Below are positions 13,657 through 64,000 of a DNA stretch of 64,000 nucleotides, one piece after another. Source of the stretch: Blepharisma stoltei ATCC 30299 (lineage: Eukaryota; Protista; Ciliophora); contig CBFDEM010000011.1 of assembly GCA_965603825.1 (NCBI GenBank), positions 1,116,704-1,180,703 on the forward strand, written 5' to 3'. The notes beneath the pieces were generated by a model, which was not told the origin of the DNA, did no database searches, and saw only the letters and a list, made by a program, of their open reading frames with translations. The translations under genes were made by a program, and so were the position numbers. Position 1 is the first letter of the stretch, and every line of letters starts with the position of its first letter.

Positions 13657-16600
13657 TTATCGGATTTTTTTCTTGACTTTATCCACCATATCATTAACGT
13701 GCTTCATCGCCTTCATCAGCTGATCAAACTGTGACGTATCAACATTTTCAGCAATTTTTTCTACCCTTCTCACCCTCTGCAAAATCTGGTCTAGCAGAGA
13801 CATATCAGATTTTTCTCCATCTTTGCCCATTTCTACTCCAATTCTTAGGTTGCTTTCTACATCTTCTTTAGGCTCCCACAGCTTCAGCTCTACGCCACTG
13901 TAAGAAATAATTTTCAGCCTTTCTTGTTCTTCTTTGTCTTGTTGCTCAATAAGTTTGAGGTTTTCTTCTTTGTATTTCTGGATCTGCGAGCTGATTTTTT
14001 CTTGGTATTTTTGCTTTCTTTCGTCAAGTTTAGCTTGGAGACGGCTTTTCTGGCGTGTTCGCTCGTCTTCCATTGATTTTTCCCATTCGTCCATTTCTTT
14101 TTGGTGCTGTTTGAGCAATTCTTCCATTTTTTCAGGCGAAATTCCTCTTTCTTTCATGACTTCGACCATCATTCTTTGTCTTTCTTCCATAATTCGACGC
14201 TGTTCTTGGATTTCTTCAAGTCTTCTTTGCTTTTCTTCGACTTCTTTAAGCTGCTCTTGAATGCTGCTGATTTCGAGTTCTTTTCTTCGTTCGAATTCTC
14301 TAAGCTGTTGGTTTCTAAGGTCTAGTTCTCGTAGTTTTTCTGCATATAAGCGCTCGTTTTCTGACCTCAGTTTGTCGATATCTTTTTCCATATCACTTAA
14401 GTTAGCATTGGCCATTCTTGGGTCGCTTTCACTGATTTTCTTGAAAATTTCAGCATTTTCCTTCATATGAGTGTCAGCCAAATTATTGAATTTTTCTCTG
14501 AACTCATCCTCGACGTCTCGCCAAGCTTGATCTTGTTCTGAATTGAGCTGAGCCATGTTATTAAATTCTAATTGGTTTTGAGCTTCTTTTTCTCGTGCTT
14601 CAAGCTCCTCAATTTTAGCTTGAAGTTCTTCAGGTTTAAGCTTGCGTTTTTTAAGAGCTTCACGTTGGGCTAAGTATTGTGCACGAAGACTGGCACGCTC
14701 AACTGCTTTAATGTTGACAGCCGCTTGGATTAAAGTGTTTTGGCGTTCACGTAGTTTTCCATGCTTAAGAGCCGTAAGTTCACCGATTTCTCTGTCGTGT
14801 TTGGCTTCAAGCAGCTGTCTTGCAAGACCTATAAGTTCTTCTGCAGATATATTTCCTGCATTTTCAAGGATTTCTTCCATTTTTCTCATCTCGATATTGC
14901 TTCTTGCATCTCTTTCAGCTTCTTTTTGTTGCATTTCTACGTCAAATCGTTCTCGATCTTGCTTTACTTTAATTTGGGCTTCTTTTTCAGCTTTCCTTCT
15001 CTTTCTATCAAGGAGCCTTTGTTTGAGGTCGGTTTCTTGCTTTCCTTTTTGAATACCAATAGCTTCATCGAGCCTATCAATTTCTTTCAATATTTGGTCT
15101 TTTTCAGTCTGGCTGCTTGCGTTTTCTAAGGCTTTAATAAGTCTTTCTTTTTCTTCGGACTGTGCAGCTTCTTCTTGGTCTAAGATATTATCAATTTGTA
15201 AGAGTTCTTGCTGATGGGCCTCTTGAAGTCTTACTAGTTCTTGGTCATATTCTTCTCCAACGTCTTCTATTTCTCTCTTTTCATCTTCATTAAGCAATAT
15301 TTCTCCATTTCCTTCAGCAAAAGCCAGCAGAGTATTTCTTTCAAGCTGGGCTAGTTCTTCTTGATGCCTTTCCTCCATGTCTTTTTTCTTCTCTTCATGG
15401 TTTGCGTTAACTTTTCCCAATCTTCCTTTTCTTCTTTCCTCTAGCCTTTTGAATAAATCGGCTTCTTGTTGTTTCTTATGAGCAGTCAGCTGGTCTTCAA
15501 TTCTTTTTGCTTCAATTTCAAAGTTCTTCATAAGTGCATCTGTTTCCTGCTGATTTTTAGAGTTTGCTAAATCGTTTTGCAGCTGCGTTCGGATTTCTAA
15601 CAGTCTCTGCTCTACTTCTTTTCTGGTCTCTTTTTTGTAGTTTTCTTTCTCATTTAAGTAGTCTTCATTAATATTTTCAACTTCATCTTTAAGCTCTTTT
15701 TCTATTGCTTCTCTCTCTTCCTTTTGTCTAGCAATTATTTCAGCTTTTTTAGGCTCGTAGTAGGCTTTTTCTCTTTGAGCTGCTCTTCGCTTTGCTGCTC
15801 TTTCTTGAAGACGCTTATTGAGTTCTGATTGAGAATTTTGTATATCAGCATTAAGGAGTTGGTCCAATCTTTGCATATTAGCATTCAGCTCACCAATCAG
15901 CTCTTGTTTATCATGTTCCATTAAATCTGGGTTATTTTGGATATCTTTGCTCAAAATTTCAGTATTTTTTACTTCTATCAGAGTCTCTTTTCTGAGAATT
16001 TCAGCTACAGCATCATTATAAGTCGTTGGAATTTCTTCATCAATTATGGCTTCTGGGAGCACAATTTCTTCATCTTCATCGAATTCTGCCTCCACAATTT
16101 TTTGTTTCAATATCTCTGGATCAATATCCGCCAATTTATCTGCAAGCTGGTCCTTCAGTTCTCTCGCTTGCTCCAACAGCTCATTCAACCCTATAGTAGC
16201 TTCTTCATCCTGGGCATCAAAAGCTGCCTTAACTCTATCATAATACTTGCACAAGTTGTCATACATATCTTTAAACTGTGACGGCTCCAACAATTCTTTA
16301 TCAAAATCAATACCATCTTCTATAGACTCCTCAAATGCAGGGACAACTGGGACTAAATTTGACTTAAACCTGCATTTCTTGCAGCAGCTTCTCAACATCG
16401 CGTATAATCTTTCTTTAGAGTTCACAGACGCCCATGCTCTCCAGTGCAAAAATGATAAAAATCCTATGATAAGAATAATCAAAATAATCAGCGCAACAAT
16501 AATGCCTGCAATAATTCCCCACTGTGGCTCAGTCATAAGGTTATCAGCTGCATATATATTTAAAGCGTCCAAATTTAAAGAAGTTCTAGCTAAAAATGTG

Positions 16601-19600
16601 ACGTCTTGGCTTGGGCAGCTTTCACTGTCCCCAACCACAGCAATAATTATATGTTTATCAGAGTCTGCATTGTCTACAAAATCATAAATTCCAGCATCGG
16701 TAAAGGTAAAGGCAAAAGTGTCGACGTAACTTGAGGAAGATTTCATTCTCCATTCCAGTTCTTTGAAGGCCGCATAGTCAAAGTTTTTATTTGTGTTTAA
16801 TAAGGAGTCTTTAAGGTAGACTGGGTAGTGAGAACGAGGGGTCAAGGAGAATAAGAAGGTGTCGTTTCGCTTTATGCAGGCAATTGGGTTGGAAAGACCT
16901 TCAGAAGAAGCGGCAAGGAAACGAGATTCGTCGTCAGTAAGAAGACGACGGTAGTAGGTGGAAAGGGAAGAGCCAGTGCCGTAGACTCCTTGAGGACCGT
17001 CTGAAGTCATGTCTACTGTATGGACTTTGGAAGAATCTGAGACTGAGGTAGCTCCAAGATAGTTGGAGCCTGTCATGGAGACTGGTCGAGACGATCCACT
17101 TGAAGGGTTGTAGATGTAAAATTGGCCATCAGATTTAAGGGTAACGCTGGCTGATGTGCTTCTACAAGTAGAATTGCAGACGTCTTCTTCACTAGGAGTA
17201 TCATCACATATGCAGACACTATAAGTAGAATCTAAGTTCCCAGATCCTCCATTGCATTCGCTTTCACAGCTTCCTGAGCTTTTACAAGACCCATCAGCTT
17301 TTCTCACCTGTCCTGATATACAATTGGTATACTGTTTTGGTGTGCAGTCTTCAGCTGAATCTACTTCACTTTCAGTTACCCCTTCAATTACAAACTCATA
17401 AGTCGGCAAACATATGCAGCTTCCATCATATTTCTGATATCCACGGTATTTCCCTTTACATTGGCAAGTATCCTGTCCTGCGTCAGAATAAGCATGTGAC
17501 CCACAGATTTTGCATTTACTCAGTCCTTCTTCGTCACCATAAGTATTTGCTGGGCACGCCAGACAGGCTGAAGCACTTTTTCCTTTGGTGGATGGGTTAT
17601 AGGTCGTAATTGGGCATGGTATAGCTGATTCTGTGCCCTCAGGGCAATAATACCCGCTTGGACAAGGGTATCCGCCATCATTACTTAGTGTCTGAGGATT
17701 TGAACGTGTAGCGCCAGCCACACAAAGATACCCAGCATCACAAGGGTAGCATTTTTCTGACGACGTCCCATTCGCATATAGTCCTGCTCCACATTCAATA
17801 CATACATTATCTGCCATATAAGTCCCAGGCTCACATGTTTCTGGGTAAAAGTTAGCTAATTGGCAGATAGTTCCAGTAGGGCATTCAATAGCTTCGTCTT
17901 CAGTGTAATATTTAGTAAGGTTTGTGCTATCATATAATGGACAATAATAATGCACAGGGCATTTTGTAGGGGTTTCTGTAAGGTCATTGCAGATATAGCC
18001 AGGAGTACATGGGATAGGAGCTGATGAGCCTAATGGACAATAAGTGCCAATAGTACAGGCCACTGGAGAGGTGGTAGCTTCTTCACAGTAATAGCCTCCA
18101 GGACAAGCCGGACAATCACTAGCAGAACCTGCTACACTTGAGCTGCCTACAGTGCCTGGAGGACAAGGAATATAAGATGTAGCTCCTAATACACAGAAGT
18201 AGCCTTTTTTACAAGGATATTGAGTATAATCGCCGATTCCTGTGTCATCACAATAATAACCAGCTGGACAGGGCTTGCAAGCGTTAATATCACTCATGGA
18301 TTTGCTGCCATTATACGTATATTTAGGACAAGGTGTTGGAGAATTGACACCAGAAGGACAGTAATTCCCTTTAGGACAGTCAAAAGGTGTAGGGTTTCCT
18401 GTAACACAGTAGCTTCCAGGTGGACAAGTAGTACAGTCAGAAACCTGGGTAGCTCCTGTATCTTTTCTGAATTTTCCTTCAGGACATTTAGTCGGTGTAG
18501 TTGTTCCTAATCCACAATAATAGCCAGATGGGCATGGAGTACCTGTTAAATAATATACAGAAGGAGTGGAATAAGGACTAGACTTTTTACACCAAAACCC
18601 AGGGGCACATTGTCCTGAAATTCTTCCATCTACACAGTATTGTCCAGATGGGCACACACTGCATTCTGTATCCGCGGTAAGACCTTCACTATCTTTATTA
18701 TAGGAGCCTGAAGGACAAATAAGCCCATACCCAGTTCCTTCAGGACAATATTTGTATTGTGGGCATAAGCTATTGGCATTTGTAGCAGCGTTGTTGCATT
18801 CTCGTCCAGCAGGGCAAGTATTGCATGTCTCTAAGTTTGTGACATCAGCATAGGTGCCTGGGCCGCATGGGTATTCATTGCTATAGCGGGTTCCGACAGG
18901 ACAATGATAGCCAGTAGGGCAGTTTGTTTGGATTGCAGTAGAGCCTGTACAGTAGTAACCACTACCACACTGTGTGCAGGATGATTGCTGAGTTTGAGTA
19001 TTATAATAACCCATTGCACAAGGTATTGGAACCCAGCTGCCTGCTTCACAATAGTAGCCTGTAGGACATTCGCCTTCTGGAGGAGTAGGAGTGGCTTTTC
19101 CAGGGTCACAATAGTAGCCAGCAGTACAGTCTCCAGTAGGCGAGCTTAGACCTTGAGAATTACAATATTTGCCATAAGGACAGTCAAGACACTGAGTATA
19201 GTCACTTAAGCCTTCTGAAGGACTATAAGTTCCAGCTGAGCAAGGAGTTACTGCAGAACTTTCTGTAGGACAATAATTCCCTTGAGAACAGATATTTCCT
19301 TGAGTTCCATCTGTCGGGTTTGCAACTGTAGATCCTGCCAAACAATAGTAGCCAGCTAAGCATGATCCTGATTGGGCTGGTAGCGCATATCCTGCACAGT
19401 AAAGTCCAGCTTCGCATTTAGTAGCTGCACTGCTCCCTTCAGGACAATAATAGCCAGGGCTGCACATTCCACCTGTAGAGTCACTTCCTGAGGGCTTATC
19501 CGTAAAAGCTCCACCAATGCAATAATACCCTTCAGCACACACACTTTGATAAAGCGCAGCTCCAAGGGTGGGGCAGTATTTTCCAGGGTCACAAGACACG

Positions 19601-22600
19601 CAAGCAGTGGAATCGCTTTGGCCAATCAAGCTATTATAAGTTCCAACTGGGCAAGGATAAGAATGATAGTACCCAGTTCCTGATGGACAATAATATCCCG
19701 TAGGGCACAATGTTTCTGAGCTAGCTCCTAAGTCGCAGTAATACCCTGGGTCACATGTGACACATGAAGACTGTTTGGTATTCATTTGATATTTTCCAGC
19801 AGGACACAAAATCTCATCAGCTGTGCCACCAGGGCAATAATAGCCTCTATCACATTCATAGGTAGGCGTGATGTCTCCTCCAGGACAATAAAAGCCAGCT
19901 GTGCAAGCTTGCCTCATATTTGATGAACTAGTGCTACCGTCACAGAAATAACCAGGGGAGCATGTAATACACTCAGTGTTTGCGGAGGCTCCGGAGTATG
20001 GCAAATAATTTCCTGCACTGCATTGGACTGGAGAAGCTGATCCTGTGCAGTAATACATAGGTGAACAAATATTTCCGGTAGTACCATCAGTTGGAGCTGG
20101 AGTTGTGGCTTTAGAGTTACAGTAATACCCAGCTTGGCAGCTTCCAGAAACAGCTGACAATTCATCGGCTGAGCAGTATTTGCCAGAGTCACAAGGAATG
20201 CTTGAAGTTGAACCTTGTGGACAGTAGTAACCAGGATTACAACGGCCTCCATAGGTTTGGCTTTCTTGAGGTCGGGAAGTTGTAGATTTTGAAATGCAGT
20301 AAAAGCCTGGGTCACATTGTCCAGCGACAGCTGAGGCTCCTAGCTGGTTGCAGTAATAGCCTGGAGTGCAGTCGATGCATGCAGCACTGGACTGTTGGCC
20401 TGAGTTAGGGTTGTAAGTGCCAACAGGGCATGGGAATTGCTTAGGATATGAAGTTCCTGATTCGCAATAATAACCTGCAGGGCATACATTTGCAGTGTAG
20501 TCTGATGTGCCTGGCGGACAATAATACCCAGGAGGGCATGTCTGACAACTTGCTTGATTCGTAAGATCTTGGTATGTTCCTGCTGCACAGAGCAAATCTA
20601 CTGCAGATCCTTGTGGGCAATAGCTGCCTTCTGGACATATGCCAGAGCCTGGCTCTCTTGTAGTAGATGACTCAGTGCAATACCATCCTTGTCTACATTG
20701 AGTGCCCATATATGTTGATAACGCTGTGGTTGTGCATGCATATCCAGCAGGGCAAGGAAGACAATGGGAAGAATCACTTCCTGTAGTGCTTGGATTAAAT
20801 GTGCCAGCCAAGCAAGCTGTTTGATCAGAACTTCCTAAGCAATAATACCCAACTGGACATGGGCCGTAATATCCTGGGACATCAGCATAAGGTTGAGGAT
20901 ATGGAGAACTTGAGGTGCAGTAGTAGCCAGCAGAGCATGAACCTGCTACAGCAGTTTGGCCAGAGTACAAACAGTATTTGTTAGCGTTACAGAGAGTGCA
21001 ATCATCAATACTTTGACCTCCTGTTGCTAATCTATACGTTCCTGGAGGGCAAAACTTTCCAATAAATGAGCCTTGCAAACAGTACTTTCCTTCTTCACAT
21101 GGTGTTACAGATGTCAGTGTAGTAGTAGGACAATAATTTCCTGGGTCACATGAAATACAAGAAGACGCTGCTGTACTTGGATTATAAGTTCCAGCTGCAC
21201 ATGCAATTTGGGCAACACTTCCTGAAGGCGCATAGTACCCTGCTTGAGCAGCATGACTATTAGAAGTTGACTCGCCAGCTGGGCAATAGTATCCAGGGTC
21301 GCACTTTCCTGTTGGCGATGGGCTCAAATCAGTACCTGCACAGTAATATCCTGGCCAACAAGTAACGCAATCGCTAGACGACCTTCCTCCATCAAAATTG
21401 TTAAAAGTCCCTGCGCTACACTTTTGAGGTGAAGTTGTCCCTGCTGGGCAATACCCTCCTGCAGGACATTTTTTCCCAGTTTGGCCATCATTTGGTGTAG
21501 CAATAGAAGCTCCTCCTGAGCAGTAGAACCCTTCTGTACAGGTATCTGTGGTACCAGTTTGGCCTGGAGATTGACAATAGTGTCCAGCGTCACACGAAGT
21601 GCAGTCTGTAGAAGTAGCCAAGCCTGTATTGGCTCCATAAGTGCCGCTTGGACATTGTAAAGGAGTAATGGTGCCTGATGGGCAGTATGATCCAATAGTA
21701 CAAATTGTTGGGGTCGTTGTGGCTGTTGTAGGGCAATAGTAGCCAGGAGTGCATGAGGCACAGTCAGATACAGAAGCTCCGCCAGTTTCCTCTCTAAATG
21801 TCCCTGCAGGGCAAGCCATAGCTGTAGACGTTGTTGAGCCTTTAGGACAATAATAACCAGCACTACAGAGATAGCCGGAGTAATCAGAGGTTCCAGCAGA
21901 GCTCACATAGTACCCAGCAGGCACTGTTTTGCAGTCTTTGACAGATTTAGCACCTTTAGTGTTTCTATAAGTCCCTGCAGGGCAGTTTGTGCCTGATGAG
22001 GAGCCTTCAGGGCAGTATTGACCAGCTGGACATCCATTTGAACCCAAAGTAGGATAACTGTTCATGCCTGATGTACATTTAAATCCAGCTGGACAAACTG
22101 ATAAATACATCATAAGCTCTGAAGTAGCTACCTCAGCACAGAAAAATCCTGCCTTGCATGTAATTTGCCCTGATGCCCCTTCATAAGTATAAGAGCCTTT
22201 ATCTGCATCAGTACAAGAACTTAAACCTGAAGCACTTGAATATTTTCCTGCAGGGCATCTTTTACAGCTGGGATAAACCCCTGGTCCTCCATCTTGAGCT
22301 CCTAATTCTTCCATATAGGTCCCAGCTGGACATGGTATAGGTGGTGATGACGAAGAAATATACCCAGGGCAAAAGTTTCCAGCAGTACAAAATGTGCATT
22401 CTCCTTGGTCACTTGCTGCACCTGCATTATAAGTCCCTACTGGGCATATATACTGCTTATCATAAGTAGTGCCTCTTGGACAATAATACCCAGCTGGACA
22501 AGTGTTTGAAGAATATGATGATGTCCCAGCTGGACAGTAATAGCCAGCAGGACAAATTAAGCACTCATGAACACCTTCTACACGAGTATTTTCGCTATAA

Positions 22601-25600
22601 GTGCCAGCAGGGCATGGAAATTCTTTAGTAAAATGAGTGCCAATTGGGCAATAATACCCAGCAGCACATACTACTGGAGGGTTATTTACATAGTTCGTAG
22701 CATAGCCACAGGCAAAACCAGGAGGACATTGGTCACATTGGGCTAGACCATAAGCTCCATACATGGTACCGACGGTGCCTGGAGGACATGGGTTTTGGGT
22801 TTTGCGGGTCGAGCCCTCAGGGCAATAATAGCCAATTTCACATTTCATGATAGCTTCTACCATGCCTGCTCCTGGGCATGCATAGCCTGCAGGGCAGACC
22901 CAGCAGCTGCTTAGAGGGTTTGCTTGGTATGGGCCAATTTTTCCTGGAGAGCAAGGAAGTGGCTGTGCTGAGCCCGAGCCACAGGAAGTCCCTGCTGGGC
23001 ATAATAAGCAGTCTTCTATTTTATACTTTCCTGTTAATGGGTTATAAGTGCCTTCTGGGCATGCGGTAGCAGATGTGCTTCCAATCGGGCAAATTCTCCC
23101 TGCAGGACAAATGATAGGATTTCCGGTGCCTTCAGGGCAGTAGTAGCCTTCAGGACATTGTAAACAGTACCCTTCTGAAATAGCTCTAAGTTTTTTATAA
23201 TAAGTACCTTCTGGACAATTTGTGCCAGTAGATACCCCTGCTTCACAATATTTCCCTTGAGGGCAAGGGGAGTTTTCATAGTTTCCTGTGCCAGCAATGC
23301 ATTCATATCCTAATGGACAGTCAAAACAAAAAGTACTGTCATAAGCTCTGACAACAGCATTAAATTTTCCATCGCCGCATTTTGTCATTGTAGAAGACCC
23401 ATCACAGTAGTTGCCTGGCCAACATTCGAATCCAATCATATCAGGTCTATCTGCATTATCTGGCAGCCAGAAGCCTATAAATGCTGGACTTATAGTATCT
23501 GAGCCAATATAAGAGTATTTGTTGGAAGTAGCATAATTGCCAGCGCCATCTTCTCCTCCTGGTATTGGATAGCACCATCCCCATCCTGATGAACAAATAA
23601 TATTGTCTTTCCAAGCATCATAAGATTTCACATAATCATCAACGTCTGTAGATGTTACAACGCTGCTTCCACTTGTCGTCAAACCTGGATAACCTGCTAA
23701 GGTAGTAGTTGACTTGCAATATGCTGAGCCTTCAACTGAGTCATAATCTGTTGCACAAGCTTTTGGCCTAGCGCTTGATCCAGTGCCTTCGCTGGCAGAA
23801 CAATAATAGTGAGCAGGACATAGCTTACACACACTTTCTCCTGAAGCTCTGTATGTCCCTTCTGGGCAAATTCTTGTAGGTCCTTGGAATGGGTCGCATT
23901 CCATATTGTCAGGACAAGTCGCACAACTAGCCATCCCAGCTAAAGAATAAGTCCCTGCGCTGCATGATGTATAGGTAACAGGGTTTCCGCTACAAGAAAC
24001 ACCAGCAGGACAAGGCACACATATATCAGGAGATCCTACTATTATATAGCCGCTCGGACATGCAACTGTAAAAGAGACTTCAGGGCCTGGAGCCATCTCA
24101 CCAGAAGTAGGTGAACTGCAAGTACCTGAGCCTGGATCTGAGTACTGTCCTTGGACGCATCGCTGAATTTCATAGCCGCTTTGATTTGGGCATGAAAACC
24201 CACCAGGACAAGCAAGACAAAATGAGTAATATTCATATGAGTAAGTCCCAGAGGCACAGCTTTGTGCAGTTTGAGTAGGATCTGCACAATATTGTCCTGC
24301 CTGGCAAGCTGTGCAGACCATATCATCTTGAGCTGAATAAGTGCCAGGAGGACATGGGACTGGTGTAGACCCCATACAATTGAACCCAGCTGGGCATGTG
24401 CATTTCGGCCCATTTGGCCACGCATAAGGTGCATTTATACATATATTTGCCACAGAGACTACTATAGTAACACTGCTATATCCTCCACTAGAATCAGATA
24501 AAGTAACAGTTACTGCTGTGTAAGGTGTGCTTCCCATCGAGCCAGCTGCAGCATATATAGTGGCCTGTTTAAATAATTTATAATCAGACGTCGTAAAGCT
24601 TAATGAAGAGGTCGTCAACGATAAATTTGTTGTATCTGAAGATGATATAGTCACAGTTACTGTTGACGATGGTTGTGAGGATAGTCATACATCAAAAGTC
24701 GCATATTGCTTACTTTGAACCAAAATAGCTAAGTTGCTCACTTTTATAGTAGGAGTACTTGCTGGAAGAATAACTGCTGTGGTGGTTTTATCTGAAGGAT
24801 AAAATATTGCACTATTAAAATTTGAATCTGACGTAGAGACTGTATATGTAATAGTAGTGGTCTGATAAGGAGATGATGCACTTGAAGGGCCCGTTATTAA
24901 AATCCTCTGTGTGCTCCAGCTTGATGACGTAAAAGTCACTTGGCTTGAGCTCAGTGTTATATATGAGTTACTTAATGTCATCGAAACTACTACATCTGAC
25001 GATGGCGCAGCTCCAATTGAAATATAGAGCTGAGTGCTGTCTTTAGCTTGGAGGCCTACAGAAGAGTCTGCTTGAATATAATATTTAGTGCTCCCATATA
25101 TTGGCACTGAAATTGAGCCTGAAGAAGCAGTTAAGCAAGTTTGGAAATTAGCAACACCGTTGTATGTGGAATCTGATGAAGAAATTGAGTGGATCACACC
25201 GATGTTGACAGGATAAGAAGTTGAAGCAAGCATCCCAGTATTGAAGTAAACTTTTTGAGCTGTGGCGTAGTTTGAATCTGTAAATGTAAGGGTAGTTGTA
25301 GTGATTTCTAAGGATGAGGAGTCTTTTGAGCTGATAGAGACGATCACATCGTATAGTGGTTTATCAGTTAAATATATCTGGTAATATTGGTTATAAGTCC
25401 CTTCAAAAATCGCATCATTCAAATTTATAGCAAGCTCTCCATTAGAATATGACGTCGCTGTAAAAGTTGTCGCAAATGCTGAATATCCTGAACAAAGAGC
25501 TTCGACTTCAACTGAGCCAGTTCCAGTATAAATTACATTGGAAAACGACAGACTGCCCAGATTAAGTGTTGCACTCCCGCCACTGCTTATTTGCCCATTT

Positions 25601-26419
25601 CCTGATTTTGCTTGTAAGTAACACTTGATGCTGGAAACAACCTTATTTCCGCTTGAATCTGTAACAGTTGCCGTCACTGAAAATCCTGATCCTTTATAAA
25701 TAGTAGTCGGATAAGAGTTAAACGTTATAGATGACGGGGTTCCTGAAGATATTGTAAAAGAGCTGCTATAAGCGTCGCTCAGGCCTGAAGCGCTTGCCTT
25801 TAACACAAAAGTCCCAGCTCCGGTGACAGAACATGAGCTAAAAGTACTTACACCATTTGTAGCTGTCACTGAAACGCTTGACATTGTACCATAGCCACTT
25901 CCAGGTATCAGACTCAACGTAATTGAGCTAGCAAAGGACGTATCCACAGTATTTTTACCTATAGGAGGGTTCAAAACCTGGACTATTACATCGCTGGAAC
26001 AAGGGTCAGAAGCACTTGTAGGCTGAGCTGAAAAATAAAGCGTTTGAGAGGTGCCTGAAGTAATGTCAAAAGAGCTGCTGGACACAGAGCCGTAGCCTAT
26101 TGCAGAAGCTATAAGTTTGTATCCGGTTCCGGTCTAAATTAGATTTTACTGTTGTAATGTAAAGATTACTAAAGGTAGCAGTGCTTGAGCTCGATGAAAA
26201 GGTCACTGCAAGATTTCCATATAAAATGACGCTGCTTGATGCAGTTGAAGGATCCAAGCTCAAATAGACCGAAGCTGTGTCACTTTGAGATTTTGTGACT
26301 GTGACAGAAAATGTGGTATACGCCGTTGTCTACTTATAAAATACTGATGACGGAGTGCTAAATGACAAAGAAAGAGCCAATCCTCCTGGAACTAATAAGA
26401 TCCAAAGAAAAAGAAGCAT
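13657..26419 (-). CDS. Giant type I membrane protein (~4243 aa) with Ser/Thr-rich beta domains, many GCC2/GCC3 (ephrin-receptor-like) Cys repeats, one TM helix and a long cytoplasmic coiled coil
   Basis: Signal peptide from ATG 26419 (MLLFLWILLVPGGLA). Introns at 26330-26344 (15 nt) and 26134-26149 (16 nt). TGA=Trp at 24685 joins the 466-aa and 3665-aa ORFs. CPxGxYC repeats and TM WGIIAGIIVALIILIILIIGFL. Confidence 0.88.
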
Positions 26420-41664: not shown

Positions 41665-44600
41665 TTAATGGCTGAAAATGTATTTCAAAGGCGGGAGCTT
41701 CATATGAGTCCTATCTTCTGCTGAGACTGCATATAAGATAAGACAAACTGAAGTTTTTCCATCTGTTTTGTCTTCACTAATTTCTCTATATAGCTCATAA
41801 ACTTCTTTCTTGAATATTTCATCTTTATTACCTGCCATATATTTATTAAACAGACATTTAGTACCACAACCAATCTGTATCGCCAAAATCTTGTATTTTT
41901 CTTTTAAGTTCTCAATTAATTCTTCTATCGTGCAAGGCCCATCCACTACAATTTCATCCCATTTAGTAAAGCCATCATTATATGCTTTCTTAGGAGCTGC
42001 CAAAGTTTCATCATAATCTACAGATTTAATCATTATTGCAGGCTGAGGTTCGAGAAAAGAAAAATAAGAAATGGCCAAGTTCATAAAGCAATCCCTCATT
42101 TTCTCTATTTCAAGCCCAAGAGTATATTTAATAAACTCAGCGACCACAATTCCAGCAATAACTGCAGTGGTTGTTGCGAGGGCTGGATTATTTTTCCAGC
42201 GATTACCTTGGTTTGGTGCCTTTCTATAGTAGAAATTCGGTAGTTATTTGCCCTCAAACTTGAAGCATTGTGGATAAAATCGATATGAAAATTGCTGTCA
42301 TCATCTTTTTCAAAGGAAATTGGGGTCATAGGCTTGATATTTTCTAGTGAAAATCCTTTGAGCCAGCTTATTAGTTCTTCTTTTAATTTAATTTCAGCTT
42401 CTGATGCAGGCCGCTGCTCTTCATTATCATCTATTTTAATTTTTCTTGGGATAAATTCCTTAACCTGGACTTTAGACGCAATTTCTTTTATGTAATTTCT
42501 GTCTCTATTCTGAGGGATATTAAGGTTAAAGGCTAGCAAATTTGCATAGGATTCTATAAAGTCTATATGATTTTCTTTTTCTGTGTCAAAAATACAAGGC
42601 TCAGGCAGCCTCCTGGTCCCTGTCCAAAGATCTTTACCATGCTTGTCTTTTGTGCCGGGCGGACATTGATGTAGTAAAGACCTTATTTCTTCATAAAAAA
42701 GCTCATTAAACTTATGTCTTGCTATTATAATACAATCATCAAAGCTGCTTATCCCAGAAAGTTCTAAAAATTCTTTTAGCAGCTTTAACTGGGCCATCTG
42801 CATATCAAAATGCCCAATACTTCCCAATTTTTGTAAATAAGCCTCTGGGTTTTCTAAATATTTATTCAACTCATCAGGGCCAGAGGTAAAGAAATCTGAC
42901 AATTTTTCTCTTGACCAATCAATACAATGAGAAATTTCATATGGATAATGCTTCAAAGTGCATGATTTAGCTTTCGTTTCTGTTGGCTGTGGGGTATCTT
43001 CATAGCTTTGGGTCAGATATGGAATGATTGCTTGGGAGTTTGCTTTTGTCCCTTCTGTTCCGCTTTCAAAAAGTGGCTTTTTGTAATAAACACATTTTCG
43101 GTCAATAAAAATTCGTGCACTGGCATTATCAACAGCCCCAAAAACTGCATTTAATTTCTCCCAAAACCTATCATTAAACAAGTTTTCTGTTTCTGGGCAA
43201 GCTCTGTTTTTCAAAGCAGTGACATTTATTTCTGGGTTCATGATTTTCGCTATCCTTGTAGCACATTCACTTTTGGATTGACCTACATTGGTAATATTGA
43301 ATAAAAACTGCCTTGTCAGGTTTGAGATTTCTACATTATCGTCGTCAGTGACTGTAAGCTCTCCAGTCCCACAGCAAACTCCGGATAATGCAAAAAGCTT
43401 TAAAAATTCGCAGCCTAAAGCACCAGATCCGACCATAAATAAATTGGCTGATTTAAGCTTGTTTAGTCCTTCTTCTCCTATAATTGCTTGGAGATCGTGA
43501 TATCTTGAGTCAGAAATACTTGCAGATGGCTGAATTAGCTCAAACCAGTCCATATGTAGCCACTGCTGGATTGGGGTAAATTTTCCTGTGAATTTTATGA
43601 CTTCTTGAGCTGCAATTCCGCCAAATATTGATGTGATTGGAGAAATTTGTAGCCTTGCGTATTTTGAGACGTTTTTAATGACAGATTCATCAATTGTTTC
43701 TAATGAAAAGTCTTCTGAGGCTTCATTAATTTCTCTTGCATAAGCCACACAAAGATTTGCGTGGTCCTCATTATGGATTTCAGGAAGAAATCCGTGGATT
43801 TCTTGGAATTTTCTGATAGCAAGCATGGCTAAATGTAAATTGGCAGGTCTGTTTTCTTTTAAGTAATCAACATGCATAAAAGGCTTTAATCCTTCAGGAT
43901 TTTTAATAGAAATTTCATAAGGCCGGAAATCATAATGGAAAGGTTTTCTTACTTCTTCAACTGTCCCATATTTTATATAATCAGGGTAATCTGTGGTATC
44001 TTCATCTATAGAAAAGCTGTGCGGGTCAATATAAGTGACCTTTCGTTCTCTGCCATCATTAAGAGGAGTCATTCCTTCGACTTCTTTGAACTTTATGTAG
44101 TCTCCGTCCTGAAACCAATGCTTGTCCTCATCATTTAGCTTCACAACTCCAGGATTGCTTCTGCTTATATTTCCAACCAAGTACGTTCTTAAGGCTGATC
44201 CATTTTTGTCAGAAATTTCAAAATTATCCCCAAAATCTACAAAAACGTGCCCAGCTGTCCCCCATGTTTCGACAGACACAAATCCAACCTGTGGGCTTAA
44301 GTCTCGGCAAATGGAGTTAACCCTTATAAGTGTGGCACTATCACTTTCAGTGAGAAGGACTAAAGAGTGTTGAGAAATGACTTCTCGAGTAATTTCTCCT
44401 CTGTGGATATTTACTGAGACATTTGGGTTGAGCGCTTGAAGCTTGGAGATGACTGATTCAGCTCGATTTTGGCTGACATGGGATTCATTTATGAAAAAAT
44501 TGGTCCCTAAATCGGAGAGAGAAATTATAGCATCATCATGCAAAGTGACTGTATGGAGGCCAGCTAATATTAAGTTTTTAGCGACTTCAAGACCAACCCC

Positions 44601-44702
44601 ACGGAGTCCAGAAACTAAAACGCGTAAGGTGAAAAGCTTTTTTTGAGTAGCCATACCGATGGCAGCAATAGAGCGTGAATAGAGATTATCTTGATTTGAC
44701 AT
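41665..44702 (-). CDS. UBA1-like ubiquitin/Ubl-activating enzyme E1, copy A (~1012 aa, apparent 1-nt frameshift near 42185)
   Basis: LYSR...GLRGVGLEVAKNLILAG, GSGALGCE, SNLTRQFLF, catalytic SCTL (Cys codon 42960-42962), FEKDDDSNFHIDFI. Adding one C restores GKIIPALATTTA as in copy B and joins the UFD ORF 41665-42147. Confidence 0.92.
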
Positions 44703-58236: not shown

Positions 58237-58380
58237 TTAGTTTTTCATTTATCAAATTTTTAATAAATTATATTTATTTAATTTAAACTATCACTACAAA
58301 ATTTATAGTAAATAATTTTTCATCGTCAAAAATCATAAATTATTATGATTTACTTTCCATAATAATTATTTTAGAATAAA

Positions 58381-58818
58381 TTAAACTGCATAAGTCTGCG
58401 TCCACATCCTAGCTACATTTTCATATGCTTCTTTATCAGCATTTCTGATTGTCGTGGCATCATTAAGGTATCCATCCTCAGTGCTAGGTTCACTCATGAG
58501 TACACAAATACTGTCAATGATCGACTCTACTGTTGTTGCACTTTGCCACTTGTAATTTAATAGCATCGTACAAGCTTTGCCATTCGAGTCCACGTTTGGG
58601 TGGAAAATAATCGTTTTGAAGTAAAATTCTGGAGGACTTTGAGGGAAGTCTCGAGGGAAAAGAATCTCGAATTGGAATCTTCCACCTTCAAAAGGAGTTT
58701 CTGGAGGTCCTATTAGTATCCCACCTCAGTGATAGAAATCATTGTCGATTAAATGGACTGATAATCCGTCGGTTGGGTCTTCACAGATCTTTGCGAAATC
58801 AGCCTGGAGCTTTTGCAT
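58381..58818 (-). CDS. Divergent E2 conjugating enzyme (145 aa)
   Basis: ATG 58818 gives MQKLQADF...FYHW(TGA)GGILIGPPETPFEGG...FHPNVDSNGKAC. The track shows only the 3' half. Confidence 0.92.
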
Positions 58819-59143
58819 ATATGTAGAATTATAAATAATGAATTTCTTTATTAGGGATATAAAGAAATGAAAAAGTTTAAAATAAATGAATTAGGAAATA
58901 CATACTGTGTTTTCAAGTCTTCATTTTTATATAATAGAGTCTCAATGTCTTTTAATAGGTATTTTTCTATGAATTCTAACAATTTGGCGAATTAGGCTCA
59001 AAGTCCCTTAATTTTTTAGACTCAGGAATTTTGCCTAATTTGATTTTTCCATAAACTCGTTCTTATTATATCTCCCTGCTCATATTTTCATCTTTATGCA
59101 CACTTTTAACTGAGAATTAAGGATTCTACATTTTCTGTTAATA

Positions 59144-62100
59144 ATGTCAAGTCAAGATCATCTCTATTCGCGCTCAATCGCTGCTATTGGGATGGCGACT
59201 CAAAAAAAGCTTTTCACCATGCGAGTCTTGATTTCTGGTCTCCGAGGAGTCGGTCTGGAAATCGCTAAAAACTTGATCTTAGCTGGCCTCAACACAGTAA
59301 CTTTACATGATGATTCTGTAATTTCGCTCTATGACTTAGGGACCAATTTCTACATAAATGAGTCTCATATAAACCAAAATCGAGCTGAATCAGTCGTCTC
59401 CAAGCTCCAAGAGCTCAACCCAAATGTCTCAGTTAGCATCTACAAAGGAGAAATTACCCAAGAAGTTATTTCTCAACACTCATTGGTGATTCTTACAGAA
59501 AGTGACAGCACCACGCTCAGAAGGGTGAATTCCATTTGTAGAGAGCTAAATCCTCAGGTAGGCTTTATATCTGTTGAAGCCTGAGGAGTGACTGGACATA
59601 TTTTTGTAGATTTTGGGGATAGTTTCGAAGTTTCTGATAGAAAATGGACAGACTTGAAGAGCTATATTATTACCAATATAAGCAAAAGCAATCCTGGAGT
59701 TATAATGATAGAGTTGAGGCAAAGACAAATACTTCAGACTGGAGACTATGTAAGGTTCAAAGATGTCGAAGGAATGACTCCTCTTAATGATGGCAGAGAA
59801 AGAAAGGTCACTTATATAGGCCGGGACAGCTTTTCAATAGATGAAGACACCACAGAATACCCAGATTATATAAAATATGGAATAGTTGAAGAGGTCAGAA
59901 AACCTTTCCATTATGATTTTCGGCCTTATGAAGTCTCTATAAAAAATCCTGAAGAATTAAAGCCTTTCATACAGTCTGATCACTCAAAAGAAAACAGGCC
60001 TTCCCATCTGCATTTAGCTATGCTCGCAATCAGAAAATTCCAAGAAGTTCATGGATTTCTCCCTGAAGTCCACAATGAAGACCACGCAAACCTCTGTGTG
60101 ACTTATGCAAGGGAAATCATTGAGGCTGCTTCACAAGAGATTTTTATAGATGCAGTTGACGATACCATCATTAAAAGCGTCGCAAAATATGCAAGACTGC
60201 AAATTCCTCCAGTTACTTCTATATTTGGAGGAATTGCAGCTCAAGAAGTCATTAAATTCACAGGGAAATTTACTCCAATCCAGCAGTGGTTACATATGGA
60301 CTGGCTTGAGCTGATTCAGCCAACTGCAAGCATTGTTGACTCAAGATATCATGATCTCCAAGCAATAATAGGAGAAGAAGGACTAAACAAGCTTAAATCA
60401 GTCAATTTATTTATGGTCGGGTCTGGAGCCTTGGGCTGTGAATTGTTACAGCTTTTTGCATTATCTGGAATTTGCTGTGGGGATGGAGAACTTACTGTCA
60501 CTGATGACAATAATGTAAAAGTCTCCGATTTGACAAGGCAGTTTTTATTCAACTTGACTAATGTGGGGCAATCCAAAAGTGAATGTGCTACAAGGATAGC
60601 GAAAATCATGAACCCAGAAATGAATGTCACTGCTTTGAAAAGCAGAGCTTGCCCAGAAACAGAAAACTTGTTTAACGATAGGTTTTGGGAGAAATTAAAT
60701 GCAGTTTTTGGGGCTGTGGATAATATAGCTGCACGAATTTATATTGACCAAAAATGTGTTTGGTATAAAAAGCCTCTCTTTGAAAGTGGAACAAAAGGGA
60801 CAAAAGCGAAATCTCAAGTAATCATTCCATTTTTAACCCAAACATATTCAGATATCCCATGGAAGCATGAAAAGAAAATCTTAACGGATAATCTATATTT
60901 TCCATATGCAATTTCTCACTGTATCGAGTGGTCTCGAGAAAAATTGTTAGATTACTTTACTTCTGGTCCTGGAGAGCTAAATAAGTACTTGGAAAACCCT
61001 GAGGCTTATATGCAAAAACTACGAAGCATGAACAATGCTGGAACACAAGTTGTCCAGCTAAAACAACTTAAAAAATATTTAGAGCTTTCTAAAATAAGTA
61101 GCTTTGATGATTGTATTGCTACCGCAAGACATAAGTTTAATAAGCTGTTTAATGAAAAAATTAGAACCTTATTACATCAATTTCCCCCTGGTAGTGATTT
61201 TTGGTCAAGGACTAGGAGATTGCCTGAGCCTTGCATTTTTGACACAGAAAAAGAAAATCATATAGGCTTCATAGAAGCTTATGCGAATTTGGTAGCCTTT
61301 AACCTTAACATCCCACAGAATAGAGACAGGAATTACATAAAAGAAGTAGCGTCTAAGGTCCAAGTTAGGGAGTTTGCCCCAAAAAAAGCCTATATGAAAT
61401 TAGACGATAATGAGGGCCAGCAGCCAATCGAAAAATCTGACATAGAATTAAGAGAAGAATTGCTGAGTTGGGTCGAAGAATTTTCATTAGAAAATGTCAA
61501 GCCAATGACACCAATTGCATTTGAAAAAGATGATGATACTAATTTCCATATTGATTTTATCCACAATGCTTCAAGTTTGAAGGCGAATAATTTCAAAATT
61601 TCTACAATAGAAAGACACCAAACCAAGGTTAGTGCTGGAAGAATCATCCCAGCTCTGGCTACAACAACTGCAGTTATTGCTGGAATTGAGGTAATTGAAT
61701 TTATTAAATATACTATTGGGCTAGAATTAAAAAAAATGAGGGATTGCTTTATGAATTTGGCAAGCCCGCTTATCCTTTTTCCAGAGCCTCAGCCTGCAAT
61801 AGTGATTAAATCTGTTGAATATGATGAAGTTTTTGCTGCTCCCAAGAGGGCATATAATGATGGCTTTACCAAATGGGATAATATTGTTATTGATGGGCCT
61901 TGCACAATGGGAGAGCTAATCGGCACTTTGAAAGAAAAATACAAGGTTTCACCATTACAGATCGCCTGTGGAAAGTTCTGCTTGTTTAATCACTATTCAA
62001 GAGATAATAAAGATGAGCTGCTTAGAAGAGAAGTTTATGAGCTATATAAAGAAATTAGTGGAGACAAAACAGGGGGTAAAAAGTCGATTGGTCTCATGTT

Positions 62101-62170
62101 ATATGCAGTCTCAGTTGAAGATAAAGCTCTAATGATGTTTCCACATTTGAAGTATATTTTCAGTCATTAG
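59144..62170 (+). CDS. UBA1-like E1, copy B (1008 aa), lacking the canonical catalytic Cys
   Basis: Two ORFs join through TGA=Trp at 59582 (VEAWG versus VETWG in copy A). Collinear with copy A. SCTLKHYP is replaced by TDNLYFP. Confidence 0.92.
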
Positions 62171-62308
62171 CATTTAATTAAAATAAAGTTATATTGAAGT
62201 ATTATTTGGCTTTTTATTAGTATAAATATTAAACGATTTTTAAAGTTAGAAAATTAAATTATTTATTACCATATTTACTTAATTTCATAAATTAATTGTA
62301 GATTTGAA

Positions 62309-62611
62309 ATGAAAATTCCTGAGGACCAGAAATACTGAGATTTATGTGCTTCAATTTGCTTGATTAATACTATAGTAGAATATCTTTATATTGATGATGC
62401 AGGCCAAATTAGCAATTTAATGCAAATAGAGCAAGCTCTAAAAGATTCTCAAAAGTTTAACTTGAAAGAAGATTCAATAAAACAGCTGTGAGATCAGGCT
62501 AAAATGAAAAAGATATGATTTGAAACTGGCTCAACATTATTTTGAATGATAGTGATCTATGAAATTTGCTTTTTTATCAAGAACAAAATAAAACTTAGAT
62601 TTCTTTGGTAA
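62309..62611 (+). CDS. Possible 100-aa hypothetical ORF or gene remnant
   Basis: ATG-to-TAA frame is open only if four TGA codons are Trp. No recognisable motif. Confidence 0.3.
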
Positions 62612-62796
62612 GCTATTATAAGTTATGCCTAGGGCAAAATATTGAAAATAAGTTATTCCTATAAAAATGATGTTATATAATTATTATAATAACGACTTAT
62701 TAAGATCAAATTTTATTTTAAATCTGCATTTTTTGGAGTAGTTCAATACGGTCTTGGTCTAATGCGTCGCTAATGAAATTGATTTCTTTTTTAGAA

Positions 62797-64000
62797 AGGG
62801 TGTAGTTAGGGTGTTAGGGTGGTTAGGGTGTTAGGGTGTTAGGGTGTTAGGGTGTTAGGGTGTTAGGGTGTTAGGGTGTTAGGGTGTTAGGGTGTTAGGG
62901 GTTAGGGTGTTAGGGCTGTTAGGGGTTAGGGTGTTAGGGGTGTTAGGTGTTAGGGTGTTAGGGTGTTAGGGTGTTAGGGTGTTAGGTGTTAGGGTGTTAG
63001 GGTGTAGGGTTAGGGTGTTAGGGGTGTTAGGGTGTTAGGGTGTTAGGTGTTAGGGTGTAGGGTGTTAGGGTGTTAGGGTGTTAGGGTGTTAGGGGTGGTG
63101 TTAGGGTGTTAGGGTGTTAGGGTGTTAGGGTGTTAGGGTTAGTGTTAGGGTGTTAGGGTGTTAGGGTGTTAGGGTGTTAGGGTGTTAGGGTGTTAGGGTG
63201 TTAGGGTGTTAGGGTGTAGGGTGTTAGGGTGTTAGGGTGTTAGGGTGTTAGGGTGTGTTAGGGTGTTAGGGTGTTAGGGTGTTAGGGTGTTAGGGTGTTA
63301 GGGTGTTAGGGTGTTAGGGTGTTAGGGTGTTAGGGTGTTAGGTGTTAGGGTGTTAGGGGTGTTAGGGTGTTAGGGTGTTAGGGTGTTAGGGTGTTAGGGT
63401 GTGGTGTTAGGGTGTTAGGGTGTTAGGGTGTTAGGGTGTTAGGGTGTTAGGGTGTTTAGGGTGTTAGGGTGTTAGGGTGTTAGGGTGTTAGGGTGTTAGG
63501 GTGTTAGGGTGTTAGGGTGTTAGGGTGTTAGGGTGTTAGGGTGTTAGGGTGTTAGGGTGTTTTGGGTTGTTAGGGTGTTAGGGTGTTAGGGTGTGTAGGG
63601 TGTTAGGGTGTTAGGGTGTTAGGGTGTTAGGGTGGTTAGGGTGTTAGGGGGTGTTAGGGTGTTAGGGTGTTAGGGTGTTAGGGGTGTTAGGGGTGTTAGG
63701 GTGTTAGGGTGTTAGGGTGTTAGGGTGGTTAGGGTGTTAGGGTGTTAGGGTGTTAGGGTGTTAGGGTGGTAGGGTGTTAGGGTGTTAGGGTGTAGGGTGT
63801 AGGGTGTTAGGGTGTTAGGGTGTTAGGGTGTTAGGGTGTTAGGGTGTTAGGGTGTTAGGGTGTTAGGGTGTTAGGGTGTAGGGTGTTATAGGGTGTTAGG
63901 GTGTTAGGGTGTTAGGGTGTTAGGGTGTTAGGGTGTTAGGGTGTTAGGGTGTTAGGGTGTTAGGGTGTTAGGGTGTTAGGGTGTTAGGGTGTTTAGTGTT
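62797..64000 (+). repeat. Telomere, (TGTTAGGG)n, equivalent to CCCTAACA on the other strand
   Basis: About 1.2 kb of 8-nt tandem repeats running to the window end, with the G-rich strand 5'->3' toward the terminus and scattered indel variants. Confidence 0.97.

Follow-up and report, generated by a model that had tools for sequence, protein, structure and literature searches.

A full-length UBA1-type E1 of Blepharisma stoltei that has lost its catalytic cysteine, perhaps a retained pseudo-E1

The E1 and E2 genes of the window

The window analysed is a 64,000-nucleotide stretch of the genome of Blepharisma stoltei ATCC 30299 that ends in a telomere. Two UBA1-type E1 genes, here called E1-B and copy A, are present in it, together with an E2 gene adjacent to E1-B (Table 1). 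The domain architecture of E1-B is that of a complete UBA1-type enzyme, both by Pfam and by full-length alignment with UBA1 and UBA6 structures. ThiF (twice), E1_FCCH, E1_4HB, UBA_E1_SCCH, and E1_UFD each score above the Pfam gathering score, and the HMMER alignment with human UBA1 (9mc4_A) runs from end to end (E=4e-153). The translation is identical to the publicly annotated 1008 aa product P0001.

Table 1. Coordinates of the E1-B locus and associated features in the window
Feature	Position	Strand	Description
Copy A, E1 with Cys intact	41665-44702	-	1 nt deletion at 42184-42186; annotated product of 865 aa
Linked E2	58381-58818	-	145 aa; HPN...C motif intact; co-duplicated with E1-B from the paralog C block
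E1-B coding sequence	59144-62170	+	1008 codons and TAG; IAD, FCCH, 4HB, AAD, SCCH, UFD
In-frame TGA, codon 147	59582-59584	+	Read as Trp
Adenylation-site changes, near-invariant residues	60449-60529	+	K436Q (60449-60451), D456N (60509-60511), E459K (60518-60520), N462D (60527-60529)
Remodelled catalytic Cys loop	60878-60901	+	Against paralog C: P to L, E to T, C to D (GAT, 60887-60889), T to N, one Lys codon deleted, S to Y
Telomere, (TGTTAGGG)n array	62810-64000	+	E2 and E1 block ends approximately 0.6 kb before the array

In B. stoltei UGA has been reassigned to Trp (PMC9942806) and this code was applied to all translations and readings. It is only because of this reassignment that the frame of E1-B is open; one TGA occurs in frame, and with UGA read as Trp there is no stop and no frameshift. 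This TGA is a sense codon rather than a lesion, since copy A has TGG at this position, the intact paralog C found on other contigs has the same TGA, and the linked E2 also encodes a Trp by TGA. In the E2 the codon concerned is number 31, for the Trp that is invariant in the UBC fold (FYHWGG); the E2 counterpart on contig C15 has TGA there as well, which neatly confirms UGA as Trp from within the genome. In the searches, proteins with a TGA were entered as separate pieces, E1-B as the two parts to either side of its TGA. An earlier note, made from the letters of this DNA, had described the 1008-codon frame as free of nonsense lesions, and this holds with the qualification of the single sense TGA.

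Elsewhere in the window, an open frame of approximately 4075 codons, with UGA as Trp and containing a single TGA, lies on the reverse strand at 13657-25884. The G+C content of this region is 0.42-0.47, compared to approximately 0.30-0.35 around it.

Paralogs and the duplicated block

The genome has been published as 64 telomere-to-telomere HiFi contigs with CCCTAACA telomeres and tiny introns (PMC9942806). A search of its 41.46 Mb, in 64 contigs, for E1 paralogs identified UBA1-type genes with 73% (copy A), 86% (paralog C, in two identical copies), 45% (the canonical UBA1 on contig C28), and 41% (a degenerate E1 on contig C55) identity to E1-B. Paralog C is located on contigs C15 (686472-689081; P0002) and C35 and has kept the Cys and all catalytic residues. 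E1-B and paralog C are sisters, with a dS of 0.25 between them, and copy A falls outside at approximately 0.65-0.70.

Copy A had been used in the earlier note as the intact reference for E1-B. This was wrong, both because the sister of E1-B is paralog C, on other contigs, and because copy A carries a 1 nt frameshift. Its motif at the Cys, KSCTLKHYP, is indeed intact on translation. The 172 codons past the frameshift are still open and conserved, with the same dN/dS of 0.18 as upstream, so the lesion must be very recent, unless it is bypassed or is a rare assembly error.

Positions 58350-62653 of the window match C15 685240-689560 with 88.7% identity over 4.3 kb. The block consists of the E2 and the E1 and is subtelomeric in both places. 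E2 and USP genes are found around both E1-B and paralog C, and the E2 beside E1-B has a dN/dS of 0.13 against its C15 counterpart. E1-B and paralog C have in common the TGA-encoded Trp, the linked E2, the subtelomeric site, and a germline insertion near the C-terminus, whereas paralog C differs in its intact catalytic residues and in its omega of 0.17.

The homology to C15 (689560 onward) ends approximately 150 nt before the telomere (62653-62810). On C15 the E1 is followed by a 676 aa USP; here it is followed by the chromosome end. It appears that the addition of a telomere has cut the E1-B block short. The two paralog C loci, C15:684972-690581 and C35:771465-777074, are identical over 5.6 kb, which suggests that they were duplicated or homogenised very recently. 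Their flanks differ slightly; at one locus the flanking USP is 635 aa, and at the other it is broken into 436 and 189 aa.

In the germline-inclusive record GCA_914767885.1, contig 11 has two insertions inside the E1-B coding sequence, at window positions 60449 and 62008, and two more downstream. The insertion at codon 436 is 123 nt, is bounded by TA, has terminal inverted repeats, abuts the K436Q replacement, and has no counterpart in paralog C. The one at codon 955 is 134 nt and is common to paralog C. By their sequence, these insertions look like internally eliminated sequences.

The catalytic loop and the ATP site

The earlier note had placed an Asp at the catalytic Cys position of E1-B, within KKILTDNLYFP. 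This was confirmed by locating the 24-mer of the loop and by alignment to the human UBA1 structure, where Asp582 of E1-B lies unambiguously opposite Cys632 by HMMER. In a family alignment of 120 proteins, 117 of the other 119 sequences have Cys at this column. The loop reads IPECTLKSFP in paralog C and ILTDNL-YFP in E1-B; within eight codons there are five replacements and one deleted codon, with approximately 10 nucleotide changes in 24.

Drift in the adenylation motif, also claimed from the letters, is likewise evident, from TDDDNVEISNLTRQ in copy A to TDDNNVKVSDLTRQ in E1-B, with GSGALGCE retained. In paralog C this ATP-site helix is TDDDNIEVSNLTRQ. Four residues of S. pombe Uba1 provide a guide to the consequences. 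C593 acts as the nucleophile. D465 serves to stabilise the closed conformation, and its replacement by Ala gives no cross-linking, with E2 charging reduced 25-fold. K596 touches D537 in the closed state, and N471 touches the ATP gamma-phosphate and PPi, the N471A mutant forming no thioester (PMC6681703). All four of these published functional sites are lost in E1-B. The thioester-specific residues have all been changed or lost, these being the Cys, the Thr next to it (T583N), the Lys three positions further downstream, which is deleted, and the equivalent of Asp465 (D456N). At the ATP site, the Asn471 equivalent is Asp (N462D), the E468 equivalent is Lys (E459K), and K436 is Gln. Kept in E1-B are the GxGxxG motif, the Ubl-tail motif (AGRIIPALATTTA), and the UFD, as are the equivalents of R21, D470, R481, K494, D544, and N545 of yeast Uba1, which are ATP and Mg ligands (PMC9378703).

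Since the C593, D465, K596, and N471 sites are lost while the main ATP and Mg ligands stay, there are solid grounds in the sequence to predict that E1-B is unable to form the thioester. Its adenylation is probably, not certainly, impaired. As encoded, neither E1 of the window is predicted to be competent.

At near-invariant columns of the family alignment E1-B departs from the consensus at 14 of 95, the highest of the 120 proteins, while paralog C does so at 3 of 95. With E1-B replacements polarised using copy A as the outgroup, 9 of the 60 E1-B-specific replacements fall in columns with an invariance of 95% or more, versus 2 of 167 on the copy A and paralog C branches (Fisher p=1.3e-4).

No new Cys gained on the E1-B lineage was found. 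The Cys in SHCIEW, noted earlier in copy A and E1-B, is present in these and also in paralog C. It was considered as a relocated nucleophile and rejected; canonical UBA1s of Blepharisma and Stentor carry it too, and it does not therefore compensate for the loss. The genome was also searched for a template from which the rewritten loop could have been copied, but it has no second match to the 24-mer of the loop with up to 3 mismatches. The tiny introns of heterotrichs (15-16 nt) account neither for the odd loop nor for the frameshift of copy A, as there is no GT...AG candidate and copy A is merely 1 nt short.

Selection on the E1-B branch

In a three-branch codon model, where each value is an average over the whole branch, omega is 0.46 for E1-B, 0.17 for paralog C, and 0.18 for copy A. 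For the E1-B branch, both an omega of 1 (p=0.0027) and an omega equal to that of paralog C (p=0.0057) are rejected. Parsimony assigns 54 synonymous changes and 84 nonsynonymous ones to E1-B, and 68 and 43, respectively, to paralog C. Neutral simulation of the E1-B branch under the observed mutation spectrum gives an expectation of 96 nonsynonymous and 42 synonymous changes, with a probability of 0.009 of 84 or fewer nonsynonymous. Approximately 4 stops are expected if all 138 substitutions were neutral and none are present (P=0.013).

The replacements themselves are conservative, with a mean BLOSUM62 score of +0.65 in E1-B, +0.87 in paralog C, and -0.39 under neutrality (E1-B versus neutral p<2e-4). 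A history in which approximately half of the E1-B branch was neutral predicts a mean near -0.2. All deletions in E1-B relative to paralog C are in frame. Gene conversion between copy A and E1-B could have misled the polarisation of changes, and this was rejected, there being no 150 nt window with more C-unique than A-unique sites. Neither a stop nor a frameshift nor an omega near 1, the marks of a pseudogene, is found in E1-B. Taken from the coding sequence, the evidence favours a gene in which catalytic constraint has been shed and structural constraint kept. A history of constraint first and then recent neutrality is conceivable, although weakened by the BLOSUM62 and open-frame tests.

Is E1-B a retained pseudo-E1?

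The earlier note had left three readings side by side, a pseudo-E1, an adenylation-only enzyme, and a relaxed duplicate. Of what it proposed, the loss of thioester formation is solid and the evidence now leans to a retained pseudo-E1, with an adenylation-only enzyme disfavoured by the Asp at the Asn471 equivalent. On balance, E1-B would seem to be a retained, catalytically dead pseudo-E1. The leaning away from a decaying duplicate is due to the omega below 1, the conservative replacements, and the intact open reading frame.

E1-B is proposed to be a UBA1-type paralog within the clustered Ubl/E2/USP gene sets of B. stoltei, generated by duplication of a subtelomeric E2 and E1 block, of which the sister block with paralog C is on C15 and C35. 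After the duplication, the crossover/Cys loop would have been rewritten, with the Cys becoming Asp, the Thr becoming Asn, and the Lys three residues on being deleted. The Asp of the closed conformation would have become Asn and the Asn that contacts the ATP gamma-phosphate would have become Asp. Because of these changes, no E1~Ubl thioester would be formed and adenylation would probably be poor or absent. Relaxed purifying selection would meanwhile have maintained the fold together with the main ligands for ATP and Mg, the motif for the Ubl tail (AGRIIPALATTTA), and the UFD that binds E2. That E1-B has a non-catalytic role is pure inference; it might bind the Ubl and/or the E2 of the cluster, for example competing with the active paralog C or regulating it.

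Counting against a retained pseudo-E1, the two identical intact copies of paralog C could supply the function, and the neighbouring E1, copy A, is frameshifted. A 201 aa query around the Cys loop had no match among transcript-derived fragments or orthologs, a search with the full-length E1-B protein found no Blepharisma relative outside the B. stoltei genome, and no E1 entries are present in the supplement of the genome paper (PMC9942806).

These same two facts, the intact paralog C in two copies and the broken neighbour, could also suit a young duplicate that is turning into a pseudogene, redundant and losing its catalytic residues by drift before any stop or frameshift has occurred. Such decay, the main rival reading, is possible but somewhat unlikely. 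It would fit with an omega 2.7 times that of paralog C, with the subtelomeric location of a block cut short relative to C15, where a USP follows the E1, and with the E1-B-specific 123 nt insertion in the coding sequence of the germline record. The invariant catalytic columns also change at or above the neutral rate, with 10 hits where 5.6 are expected. Set against this, omega is below 1 (p=0.003), the in-frame indels and the tight conservation of the adjacent E2 do not suggest decay, and the replacements are nearly as conservative as those in paralog C (+0.65 versus +0.87) and well removed from both the neutral (-0.39) and the half-neutral (approximately -0.2) expectations. The open frame is less decisive for a half-neutral history, where approximately 2 to 3 stops would be expected (P approximately 0.05-0.1).

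In the manner of MoeB/ThiF, E1-B might instead be an adenylation-only enzyme, in which the Ubl-AMP is made and then held or handed to a nucleophile that is not the enzyme's own Cys. The retained equivalents of R21, D470, R481, K494, D544, and N545, along with the GxGxxG and Ubl-tail motifs, would allow for this, and in yeast Uba1 the D472A mutant has full ATPase activity and the Cys mutant turns over ATP at approximately half rate (PMC9378703). However, such an enzyme is improbable here, given the Asp at the equivalent of the Asn that S. pombe Uba1 needs for its thioester (N471A; PMC6681703), the Lys at the near-invariant neighbouring Glu, the Gln at K436, and the loss of ATP-site residues together with the Cys in three other Cys-less ciliate paralogs. 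That the Asp codon is an artefact of assembly or consensus, such as a collapse of paralogs, is scarcely credible. Paralogs of approximately 90% identity are present in the genome, but the assembly is telomere-to-telomere PacBio HiFi of a virtually homozygous strain (PMC9942806), the loop differs from paralog C by approximately 10 substitutions and a 3 nt deletion rather than by a homopolymer indel, its 24-mer has no near copy, and the whole 4.3 kb block, including the non-coding flanks, is consistently diverged by approximately 11% from C15.

Other Cys-less E1s in ciliates

Three further UBA1-type paralogs without the Cys were identified in ciliates, these being the C55 gene of Blepharisma, P0026 of Stylonychia lemnae, and P0107 from a Stentor-like metagenomic source. 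The C55 gene (C55:255872-258757, reverse strand) has 961 open codons and is full-length and E1-like, but heavily degenerate with a branch length of 1.67. Its loop is IPNEFLIKYSP in place of IPMCTLKNFP, its ATP motif is SNLSNHTLF, and ESGTxGTK has disappeared. In a family tree that was made by a quick search with midpoint rooting, and in which its own branch is very long, the gene groups with the clade of copy A, E1-B, and paralog C. It stands alone, with no E2, USP, or Ubl neighbours. Of P0026 and P0107, one has SNLNTQ and AVNN at the ATP site and the other has SSKLDRE and AVNN, and in each case the branch is longer than that of the canonical sister.

Like E1-B, all three have the full or nearly full E1 architecture, and in all three the loss of the Cys is accompanied by loss of the ATP site and by a branch longer than that of the sister. 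Unlike E1-B, C55 is outside a Ubl/E2/USP cluster and is far more degenerate, and the origins of the three are independent of it. C55, a much older Cys-less E1 that is long-lived and still open, indicates that such proteins can persist in the B. stoltei genome. It can be tentatively suggested, as something short of probable, that full-length pseudo-E1s, having arisen independently at least four times, are a recurrent and selectively retained class in ciliates. E1-B would then be a young member that regulates a clustered, lineage-specific Ubl pathway by binding Ubl or E2 without activation, as the counterpart at the E1 tier of the UEV pseudo-E2s.

Significance

Relatives of enzymes that are themselves dead are known among E2s, deubiquitinases, and kinases. 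The usefulness of E1-B lies in its active sister with 86% identity, paralog C, which makes of the pair a natural experiment on the residues needed only for catalysis. The changes in E1-B single out residues that have been assigned structurally to the closed, thioester-forming state. If it is expressed, E1-B would be a ready-made probe of E1 binding to Ubls and E2s without turnover, and a candidate for the regulation of a ciliate Ubl system that is as yet undescribed. If it is silent, it would show unusually cleanly how an E1 begins to decay.

Comparison with known systems

E1-B shares with the canonical E1s of the UBA1/UBA6 type (human, S. pombe, and S. cerevisiae) the six-domain architecture, approximately 36-45% identity, and matches of approximately 1e-153 to solved structures, and it has likewise kept the main ligands for ATP and Mg along with the Ubl-tail motif and the UFD. 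It differs from canonical UBA1 in having Asp for the Cys, Asn for the next Thr, no Lys596, Asn for Asp465, and Asp for Asn471. A literature search for pseudo-E1s found no description of a full-length UBA1-type E1 without the Cys.

The UEV proteins (Mms2, UEV1, and TSG101) are E2 variants that are without the catalytic Cys and have kept the fold for binding, a function that has been established experimentally. In concept E1-B is similar, being a ubiquitin-cascade fold without its Cys, although the tier and the fold are different and a binding function of E1-B is a proposal. Within the E1 family, SAE1, NAE1 (APPBP1), and the inactive adenylation domain of UBA1 are degenerate adenylation modules that have been kept for structural roles. 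The role of the IAD of UBA1 has been described (PMC9378703). All of these are half-enzymes beside an active partner domain, whereas E1-B is a complete E1 in which its own active half has been disabled.
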